Shown: positions 24,453 to 28,020 of the stretch, in pieces
Layout: each line of letters opens with the position of its first letter
Position numbering within the stretch: the stretch's first letter is position 1
Assembly: GCA_904063045.1 (NCBI GenBank)
Contig: CAJFCJ010000005.1
Coordinates: forward strand, 2,061,988-2,125,987
Direction: 5' to 3'
DNA: 64,000 nucleotides
Origin: Dimorphilus gyrociliatus
Taxonomy: Eukaryota; Animalia; Annelida
Program-made: the position numbers and the translations under genes
The notes under the pieces: model-generated
Told to the model about the DNA's origin: nothing
The model's database searches: none
Seen by the model: the letters and a program-made list of their open reading frames with translations, nothing else

Positions 24453-25591
24453 TTACATTATATCGTCCTGTGGAATTGCTACAAAAGTCCTTGTATCATC
24501 GTTTTCATCTATTTTAGTTGGTCGTAATCGAACAGAACTAGCATCTTTAGATTGGCAACCAACATTTTTAAACTCTTCAAAGTAACCGTCATTTGACCAC
24601 ATAGCGTCAATCACAACTTGAAATTTCGCCATTTTATAACAAAAATGTTTCTATTGGGAATGCAAAGTTAAGTAAAATCCAAATAAAAGGCCTTTTTATT
24701 ACTTACCAAAAGTCTCGACTGTTGCGATGTTAGTACTTCACCTTTCTTACAGATCACGTAGTCTTCTCGCAAATTAATGATGCCTAAAAAGAAACGCATT
24801 AAGAATTTTGGCTTATGACATTGTTGCAGCAAATAGTAAAATTTAGGAAGTATCAGACCTATCATTTACACCCTCATAGATTTCAGGGTTAGGCTCAAGT
24901 TTTCGTCATATTTAGTATAGACTATTGAAAATGCAATGCATAGAAAAAGCATGCTTACCTCTTACAAGTTTCGTTGGAAGACCTAATTGACGCAGTTCAG
25001 GTTCCATATTGAAAGGGAACATTTCTAATGGACCTTCTTCAAGTGAAACGGTTTGTTCGGCTAAATTTCCCGCTCTAGCATAGTCAGCTTCAGAATAATT
25101 GGTAAACCATTTAAGAACATCCTCCTTAGTTTTATTAGTAAATAGTAAACCCGTTTGCCCTTTCAGACGTTTGGATATAAGATGTACATTTGGTTTATAA
25201 GCCTCTTCTTGAACACGTCCCAAAGCAATACTCATAACCTTATTCTTTCCGAAGCAAAATTTACTACCTTTCCATTCTAAACGAACGTCTTTTAAAAGAC
25301 CATTTCGCATATTGGCAACGGAAAATGTAAATACTCTTTCATACTTGTCAAGAGCTTCACGGATCTGAGTCAGAAAAGAAGATTTTTATAGATATGAAAA
25401 TCATGCTGCTTTTCACGAAAATAAAAATGCTTACATTCTCTATTAATTTTCCTTTTATATCTGTTCCTTTCTTGGCCGTCTGCGTAAGAGACACTGTAGA
25501 ATTAGAAGAATTATTATTTAAAGATATTTTTGAAATATTAATATAATAAATTTCAAAAATTACCTTTACGATCTCTCTTCGACCTCGGCAT
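24453..25591 (-). CDS. MRTO4: mRNA turnover 4 / ribosome assembly factor Mrt4
   Basis: MPRSKRDRK start, [51 protein letters not shown]. Confidence 0.95.
24850..24912 (-). ncRNA. Candidate intronic box C/D snoRNA in MRTO4
   Basis: C-like ATGACGA (24909-24903), D' CTGA, C'-like ATGAG, D CTGA (24856-24853). About 66 nt upstream of the 3' splice site in an unusually long (~170 nt) intron. The terminal stem is weak. Confidence 0.5.
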
Positions 25592-25874
25592 TTTTCTAAT
25601 TCCGACCACGTGAATTACACCGGAACCGGATATACAGAAAATGCAAGTGAGGCACTGTGGGAAAGGTTATTCTAATTGATTCTCGTCTCAAACTGTCTGA
25701 CGGCTTTTTGCACTTATTCAGTGCTTATTTCTCACCTACGTTATTCAGCGGCTCTTCTTGTTAAATCCAAATTCCTAGTAAGTATATCTTTACTTTACCT
25801 ACATATTCTTGGTGCTTAATAGCAAAAGCCGGTGCTTGTCGAGCCGTTTTGCGGCTTTTTCCCTGGTAACCGTG

Positions 25875-25882
25875 TGACGTCA
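25875..25882. promoter_or_regulatory. CRE palindrome in the MRTO4/14-3-3 divergent promoter region
   Basis: TGACGTCA. A YY1-like CGCCATTTT lies near 25976. Confidence 0.4.
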
Positions 25883-26338
25883 CAGTCCCGAGTTAAAATG
25901 AGTCATTGTCTAGATGTCATGATGCTAATAAAAGCAGAGGTATTCTAAAATGGCCTGTATAAGTTGATTTTACGCCGCCATTTTGAATAATTGTGAAGTT
26001 GATAGTCTAATCTCATTGGTTCTATCGTTGCTGCACTGCGCCTATTTATAGACGAACTATTTACTTATCGACGGTAGGAACTGCTGAATTCCTCAGGTTT
26101 TTACTGATTATTTTAATAACTCACACTGTATTTTATATCTTTTGTTTCCGTTGCTCCATGTAAGCTTGTTGTTGAAAGTCAATTTTGTTTATGGCGCGAA
26201 ACCATACTTAAACGCGCAATAATACATGCTATAATTGTAGTTCTACAGTGTCCGCCATATTGAATTCAACCGATTTCGCCAAAAAAATTTCATAACTGAT
26301 CTCTTCTCTTTTACCATTTCCCTCACGCAGAATCGAGA

Positions 26339-28020
26339 ATGAGTACCGAAAAGGATGATCTGGTCCAAAGGGCCAAACTCGCTGAACAAGCAGAAAGATA
26401 CGACGATATGGCTGCAGCCATGAAAAAGGTAACGGAACTCGGAATGGACCTGACTAATGAGGAAAGAAATCTCCTCTCGGTTGCCTACAAGAATGTCGTT
26501 GGTGCGCGTCGCTCATCGTGGAGAGTGATTTCGAGCATTGAAGCTAAAACTGAAGGCAGCAAGGCCAAGCAGGAAATGGCGAAGCAATACCGCGAAAAAG
26601 TCGAAGAAGAGCTTCGCGACATCTGCAACGACGTCTTGGTGAGTAATCCATACCTGCTTTTTGTTCCTGTTGTGTGAATTCAATCAAACCAAAAAATATG
26701 GAAGTTAATTGTCTTTACTAATTGTCTGCCCTATCTCGCTTTCTATTCCGCCTTGTTATAAGTGCATGCGTATTGACCGTTTTTTCGAACAGGCCTTGTT
26801 GGATAAGCACCTGATAAGAAAAACCAAACCCGCAGAAAGTCAAGTGTTCTACTTGAAAATGAAGGGAGATTATTACAGGTACCTAGCTGAAGTGAATAAT
26901 CAGGGAAACAAGGATGAAAAATCGGATAAGCAAGGTTAAACACGTTTTTAGAAACGATGCTTGGGGACTGCACATACCCGCGTGTTGCCAGTTGACATGG
27001 ATTGTAGTAGATCATTGTATATATCTCTTTAAAACAGGGTCTGCTTGAAAAATTTCTCGTTCCAAAGTCGAGCAGCGCCGAGAGTAAGGTCTTTTATCTT
27101 AAAATGCAAGGAGACTATTATCGGTATTTGTCCGAATTTGCTGAATGGGATAAAAGTACCACGCCTAAAGATGATTTATCTAAACGTTTATGTAAGTGTC
27201 AGATGATGTGTGCTTACTCCCAAAAAAAAAATCCTGACCAATTAATATCTAGCAACTGGCAACAACACTATAAAACTCTTTAAGAATTTTAAGTATTTTA
27301 TAAAGTAAATAATGTTATCACAGACGTGATAGACGCTTCAAAGAAATCATACGAAGAAGCTTTCGATATAGCTAGAAGCAACATGCAACCGACTCATCCG
27401 ATTCGGTTGGGTTTAGCGTTAAATTTTTCTGTGTTCTATTACGAAATTCTTAACGCACCTGATATGGCCTGCCATTTGGCAAAGCAGGTAATCGCGAGTT
27501 TTGGGCGTCTAATACGGAATGTGCATGTCTCCAAACCTAGATATACGAGATTAATAATATAGGTGATTGATAACGCTTTTTTGAATTAATTTCAACAGTG
27601 ATGAATGAAGTGATTGACAATTCTCGTAGTGCTTACCAAGATGCTTTTGACGTAGCTAGGAAGGAAATGCAGCCTACTCACCCCATCCGACTCGGCCTTG
27701 CATTGAATTTCTCAGTATTCTATTACGAGATATTGAACAGCCCAGATAAAGCATGTGAACTAGCGAAAAAGGTGTGTTTTCAATTTACTAACTTGTTTTA
27801 TTTGAGTTTGAAATCAAAATTTACCCAAAAATGCTTTGTCTACCTATTCTAACATCTTTTTCAGGCTTTTGATGACGCTATTGCCGAGTTGGATACATTG
27901 AACGAGGATTCGTACAAGGATAGTACATTGATCATGCAATTGTTGCGTGATAACTTGACCCTGTGGACTTCTGATACGAATCAGGAGGACGGAGATCAAG
28001 GAGATGGTGGTGACAATTAG
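26339..28020 (+). CDS. YWHAZ: 14-3-3 protein (zeta-like). Exons 26339-26638, [26793-26934 | 27038-27191], [27324-27487 | 27599-27771], 27865-28020
   Basis: [66 protein letters not shown] and [22 protein letters not shown]. Two duplicated exon pairs have matching phases. Confidence 0.97.
26983..27264 (+). promoter_or_regulatory. Putative selector/docking RNA duplex: 26983-26994 TGTTGCCAGTTG with 27253-27264 CAACTGGCAACA, flanking 14-3-3 exon 2B
   Basis: Perfect 12-nt reverse complement in the two introns flanking exon 2B. Confidence 0.7.

Follow-up and report, generated by a model that had tools for sequence, protein, structure and literature searches.

Candidate nested RNA helices around tandem alternative exons of a 14-3-3 gene in the annelid Dimorphilus gyrociliatus

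Two nested helices are predicted among the introns of a 14-3-3 gene of Dimorphilus gyrociliatus, around two adjacent pairs of alternative exons. The gene was analysed within a 64,000-nucleotide stretch of DNA, which is referred to as the window. The inner helix (H1) flanks exon 2B, the outer helix (H2) encloses exons 2B and 3A, and the main mRNA of the gene joins exon 2A directly to exon 3B. We suggest that H1 and H2 are loop-out and bridging helices that favour this default 2A-to-3B splice; they are probably functional, a judgement that we hold at close to even strength. That the helices fold in vivo and cause the splice choice is what we infer from the sequence of their arms, the folding predicted for them, the lack of any change in these arms among relatives, and the splice joints present in RNA contigs.

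The 14-3-3 gene lies on the + strand, and its exon borders were set by the reading frame together with RNA joints. Coding exon 1 (e1; 26339-26638) comprises 100 codons and ends at a GTGAGT donor. The last coding exon (e4; 27865-28020), with the stop codon at its end, was placed by translation and RNA joints. Between them lie two tandem homologous pairs, 2A/2B and 3A/3B. In the first pair, exon 2A (26793-26934, 142 nt) is the major variant and has the weak donor AAG/GTTAAA, and exon 2B (27038-27191, 154 nt) is the minor variant and has the consensus donor TAT/GTAAGT. In the second pair, exon 3A (27324-27487, 164 nt) is the minor variant and exon 3B (27599-27771, 173 nt) the major one. The frame needs one exon from each pair. 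Exons 2A and 2B encode homologous 14-3-3 segments and are each 1 mod 3 in length, so that inclusion of both or of neither causes a frameshift. Both e1-2A-3B-e4 and e1-2B-3A-e4 give open, 14-3-3-like reading frames, and the 14-3-3 domain match Pfam PF00244 is recorded for the orthologous exon ORFs. A 5'UTR exon with its end at 25777 was also seen, over 25754-25777, as loose ends in three RNA runs; it is spliced from 25777 to 26331, with a 553-nt intron taken out. A further perfect 12-bp inverted repeat, GACACTGTAGAA (25490-25501 with 26241-26252), is located upstream of the coding exons, and its 3' copy falls within a stretch that is conserved in relatives.

The splices in use were read from assembled RNA contigs of four runs from three studies. 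Rare paths are dropped from such contigs and their depth is unreliable; the presence of a joint is informative, and its absence is not. The main contig was e1-2A-3B-e4 in all four runs, with the joints e1 to 2A (26638/26793), 2A to 3B (26934/27599) and 3B to e4 each found in every run. The intron removed after 2A in the main mRNA is therefore 26935-27598, 664 nt long. The main isoform thus uses the weakest donor of the gene, that of 2A, across the longest intron of the gene. The median intron of D. gyrociliatus is 66 bp, and retention increases with intron length (PMC7854359); the 664-nt intron is ten times as long as that median. Minor joints were 2B to 3A (27191/27324), in runs X2 and X5, and 3A to e4, in run X8. 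The 2B-to-3A joint occurred with the surrounding sequence still unspliced, and unspliced contigs also continued from the 2A end across intron 2A-2B to reach 2B and farther. The region enclosed by the helices is represented in the RNA contigs, and intron 1 in none of them. No joint of e1 to 2B, 2A to 3A, 2B to 3B or spliced 2A to 2B, and no backward joint, was reported in the contigs of the four runs, from which rare forms are dropped. Because only contigs were available, with rare joints dropped and depths unreliable, they do not fix isoform ratios or strict mutual exclusivity. At the contig level, these results indicate that the enclosed exons are predominantly skipped.

The core of H1 is a pair of complementary 12-mers. 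TGTTGCCAGTTG (26983-26994), in intron 2A-2B, is the exact reverse complement of 27253-27264, in intron 2B-3A. A sequence-only reading of this DNA had proposed this perfect 12-bp duplex around exon 2B. Its coordinates and complementarity are exact, and the exon that it flanks is indeed left out of the main mRNA in each of the four runs. The core extends to a helix of 18 bp between a 5' arm at 26983-27002 and a 3' arm at 27247-27264 (both +), in which A26995 and A26997 are bulged. The extended helix was calculated at -26.5 kcal/mol and the core by itself at -18.8 kcal/mol. Folding was carried out in contexts of 664 nt (26935-27598), 1226 nt (intron to intron) and 1682 nt (the whole coding pre-mRNA). 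H1 was found in the minimum-energy and centroid folds, with a mean pair probability of at least 0.97 in these contexts. The 5' arm overlaps the only branch-point-like motif of intron 2A-2B, TTGAC at 26992-26996. This motif, also put forward in the sequence-only reading, is the sole yUnAy match of the intron, with its A at 26995, 42 nt from the intron end and 60 nt from its start.

A second helix lies next to H1. H2 is formed by a 5' arm at 26961-26978 (+) and a 3' arm at 27516-27534 (+), the latter located in intron 3A-3B and followed after 64 nt by the 3B acceptor. A single bulge and a single mismatch interrupt the 17 bp of H2, which was calculated at -25.4 kcal/mol and is part of the minimum-energy fold, with a pair probability of about 0.9 in the same three contexts. 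Neither H2 nor the joint of 2A to 3B, rather than to 3A, had been part of the sequence-only reading. The 5' arm of H2 begins 26 nt after the 2A donor and is separated by 4 nt from that of H1, which follows it; the two helices therefore nest. Since the main mRNA is e1-2A-3B-e4, the nested helices span the 664-nt intron that is really removed. H1 and H2 also folded in the orthologous stretches of two relatives, with the same result as in the window, and RNAalifold retained both. RNAalifold further predicted a weak outermost helix of 7 bp, H3, between 26943-26950 and 27568-27575 (both +), in which one pair is changed on a single side, from U-A to U-G.

Other pairings in the gene were also considered. 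A duplex of intron 1 with exon 4 (26718-26737 with 28001-28020, -25 kcal/mol) was rejected, as exon 4 differs there in both relatives. A strong pairing that is not conserved indicates that strong pairings can arise by chance here, and the invariance of H1 and H2 stands out all the more. The region of the 2A acceptor can also pair with the opening codons of 2B (26779-26804 with 27031-27056, -23.7 kcal/mol). Such a helix would enclose exon 2A and cross H1, and might represent an alternative state; its energy does not exceed the shuffle background, and it was therefore not adopted. A search of the conserved introns against Rfam gave no RNA family or snoRNA at E <= 1.

The energies of H1 and H2 were compared with chance using a windowed duplex scan of all 10 intron pairs with 150 shuffles; global duplexfold of whole introns was uninformative, as it allows very long interior loops. 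For the intron pair that holds H1, the best duplex had -25.8 kcal/mol against a null mean of -14.3 (sd 2.6), and this energy was reached in 0 of the 150 shuffles. The value for the H2 intron pair was likewise reached in 0 of 150 (null mean -15.9, sd about 2.5). Only these two pairs reached about -26 kcal/mol, and the other eight fell between -9 and -18. An extreme-value fit to the nulls gave about 0.002-0.003 for each of the two helices, before correction for ten pairs, and the chance of a perfect 12-mer match between the two particular introns of H1 was estimated at about 0.003. Perfect 12-mer inverted repeats spaced 50-1000 nt apart are not rare in the AT-rich window: about 20 distinct pairs occur in its 64 kb, nearly all of them AT-rich or of low complexity. 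A gene-wide windowed scan that included exons gave several pairings at -24 to -26 kcal/mol, and segment-wise shuffles of the whole gene, exons included, gave -24 to -28.7 kcal/mol. Since shuffles with exons reach comparable energies, duplex energy alone proves nothing. The statistical support is moderate and depends on the introns around the alternative exons being the right search space.

Relatives were sought by word-index protein searches with the ORFs of exons 1, 2B and 3A, and two diverged lineages with genomic contigs were found. One lineage (L001-L004) is about 87% identical to the window over 4.4 kb and the other (L005/L006) about 83%; beyond these, the next matches in the ORF searches were other animals. 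The stored gene calls of L001-L004 and L006 (P0001, P0121, P0177) translate TGA as tryptophan. It is because of these calls, and not through a difference in sequence, that the loci were reported as not translating to the query. A metagenome scan yielded 80 14-3-3 loci of other organisms, with no close relative and no tandem exon 2 among them, and the exon-2 pair may therefore be lineage-specific, as judged from this small sample. Short ORFs of other organisms (P0169, P0170, P0172 and P0174-P0176) carry tandem copies of the 14-3-3 exon-3 segment with very short spacers; exon-3 duplication therefore looks widespread outside this genome.

Conservation was then expressed as three-way identity among the window and the two lineages. 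It was 44% in intron 3B-e4, about half in the 5' half of intron 1, 92% in intron 2A-2B and 89% in intron 3A-3B. Among the exons, it was 99.4% in 2B (153/154 columns), 98.2% in 3A (161/164), 95% in 2A and 94% in 3B. Nucleotide conservation over the three lineages is thus higher in 2B and 3A, the minor exons, than in 2A and 3B, the major ones, and synonymous sites in 2B and 3A are almost frozen. The 3' 90 nt of intron 1 (26706-26792) are nearly invariant in the three lineages, and its 5' half varies freely. Exon 3B starts with TGATGAATG (27599-27604) in the window versus TGAATG in L001, L006 and run X8, which gives the window three additional bases and hence one codon more.

All four arms of H1 and H2 are identical in the three lineages, and neutral-looking intron sequence is about 44% identical. 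Intron 2B-3A is conserved from its donor to 27264 and collapses at 27265, where A, G or T is found across the three lineages; the end of the conserved block coincides exactly with the outer edge of the 3' arm of H1. On the loop side of the 5' arm, variation starts at 27005. Run X8 represents a fourth, more closely related lineage, in which the arms are unchanged and 3 substitutions occur within 35 nt beyond 27264. Compensatory, two-sided changes were seen in 0 of the 188 pairs predicted by RNAalifold for the three lineages. There is no covariation evidence because the arms never vary. Conservation of the arms, which the sequence-only reading had set as a check, was borne out, with arms that are invariant in relatives about 13-17% diverged and in the closer lineage. 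Introns 2A-2B and 3A-3B are conserved almost throughout, so conservation is not specific to the arms. These results indicate that the arms are under constraint; their pairing is predicted from sequence.

From these results, the following mechanism may be proposed. H1 could form once intron 2B-3A has been transcribed. It would then enclose exon 2B and hold in a helix the U-U-G of the only branch-point-like motif upstream of that exon. H2 would subsequently close over 2B and 3A, and both helices would be anchored just downstream of the weak 2A donor. In this state, H2 would bring the 2A donor within about 90 unpaired nt (26 nt + 64 nt) of the 3B acceptor. The expected outcome is the default e1-2A-3B-e4 mRNA, with 2A joined to 3B across the 664-nt intron. 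If the helices were absent or opened, the strong consensus donor of 2B and exon 3A would become usable, which would give the minor 2B-3A form. The shared anchor beside the 2A donor might moreover couple the two exon clusters, so that the gene would make essentially two proteins (2A+3B and 2B+3A) rather than four. Such coordination of distant choices by RNA structure would be independent of the insect 14-3-3zeta switch. We offer this last step tentatively and consider it unlikely.

The conserved intron blocks could also be protein-binding silencers or enhancers, or other signals typical around alternative exons, with the complementarity of the arms fortuitous and of no structural role. We regard this as possible but less than an even chance. 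Conservation of introns 2A-2B and 3A-3B nearly throughout, beyond the arms, and the absence of covariation both fit such signals, as do the abundance of perfect 12-mer inverted repeats in the window and the similar energies of the gene-wide shuffles. However, two adjacent helices are both outliers among the intron-intron pairings, their nesting fits the intron really removed, and the conserved block stops exactly at the edge of a helix; these points argue for the loop-out and bridging helices. It is also conceivable that the helices promote the enclosed exons. Exons 2B and 3A would then share one loop, leading to the 2B-to-3A splice or to back-splicing of 2B into a circular RNA. Inverted repeats around an exon are a known architecture of circular RNAs, and loops may promote splicing (PMC10790352); the 2B-to-3A joint with its surroundings unspliced would agree with this. 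Against it stand the absence of any backward joint in the contigs of the four runs and the minor status of the enclosed exons in every run, and we consider it improbable.

A true competition between docking site and selectors, of the type known from insect 14-3-3zeta, Dscam and Mhc, was weighed as well. The docking-like sequence 27247-27264 is complementary to the selector-like sequence 26983-27002, and both are invariant in the three lineages. If the mechanism were of this kind, the downstream arm would be contested by the arm in intron 2A-2B and by a selector in intron 1. Competing pairings are the insect paradigm, and a partial match, TGTTCCTGTTG (26661-26673, +), is present in intron 1 of the window, where the sequence-only reading had pointed to it as a weaker partner. 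However, this element belongs to the half of intron 1 that evolves fast, and in L001 and L006 unrelated sequence stands in its place. As the intron-1 partner is not conserved, selector competition is not supported. The best pairing of intron 1 with intron 2B-3A, at -15.3 kcal/mol, equals background, and in insect 14-3-3zeta the selectors follow the variants instead of preceding the first of them. No second selector for 27247-27264 was found, and other intron pairings with the H1 arms were at background level. Competition of this type is thus very improbable. Since no conserved competing pairing was found, the arrangement is better described as a loop-out with a bridge than as docking and selector competition.

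In insect 14-3-3zeta, the elements IE1 and IE2, downstream of exons 5a and 5b, pair with IEa downstream of exon 5c (PMC4174434; PMC6071210). The exon 5 cluster of Drosophila 14-3-3zeta was reported by Yang et al. 2011, as described in PMC4174434, PMC6071210 and PMC4691838, and the arm topology has been established experimentally according to the literature (PMC4174434, PMC6071210, PMC10790352). The present gene belongs to the same gene family and likewise has tandem homologous variant exons. As in H1, a conserved arm after the earlier variant pairs with a conserved arm after the last variant, and the later variant is looped out. The insect-type mechanism invoked in the sequence-only reading therefore agrees in arm topology, but a competing selector was not found. 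Unlike Drosophila 14-3-3zeta, the arrangement described here consists of a two-exon cluster with a single arm pair and no selector competition, is known from sequence and contigs, and has a second helix that reaches into the neighbouring cluster. The duplicated exon is presumably also another one, exon 2 here, with the insect cluster corresponding to exon 3 of the present gene. On the part of the protein that these alternative exons encode in insects, our literature search yielded nothing usable.

Vertebrate mutually exclusive exon pairs, for example those of human ATE1 and DNM1, are controlled by competing RNA structures. Like the present case, they are clusters of two exons outside arthropods, and their introns carry complementary boxes that are strongly conserved. 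They differ in that competing alternative pairings have been demonstrated for them, whereas the present gene yielded no conserved competitor. RNA bridges and exon loop-outs have been described in Drosophila Nmnat, CG33298 and Gug and in mammalian CASK, PHF20L1 and DST (reviewed in PMC10790352). In these genes, as here, complementary intron sequences flank the skipped exon or exons and join a distant donor and acceptor. In contrast to the known bridges, two or possibly three helices are nested here over two adjoining alternative exon pairs, and the genome is one whose introns are normally about 66 bp. The predicted H1/H2 arrangement is thus probably a new example of a mechanism known from insects and mammals, and its likeness to the insect 14-3-3zeta switch would represent convergent evolution.

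Insects and a few vertebrate genes provide well-documented examples of exon choice controlled by RNA structure, and no paper on such control of alternative exon choice in annelids, or in this species, was found in our literature search. If the helices are real, this locus of about 700 nt would make it possible to test cleanly, in a genome whose introns are typically 66 bp, whether a default splice across an unusually long intron can be enforced by nested helices, and whether such helices can link two neighbouring exon choices. The most interesting point is that the two exon clusters might be coupled through the anchor common to both helices. The gene would also make a case for the repeated evolution of structure switches within the same gene family that has a proven switch in flies.
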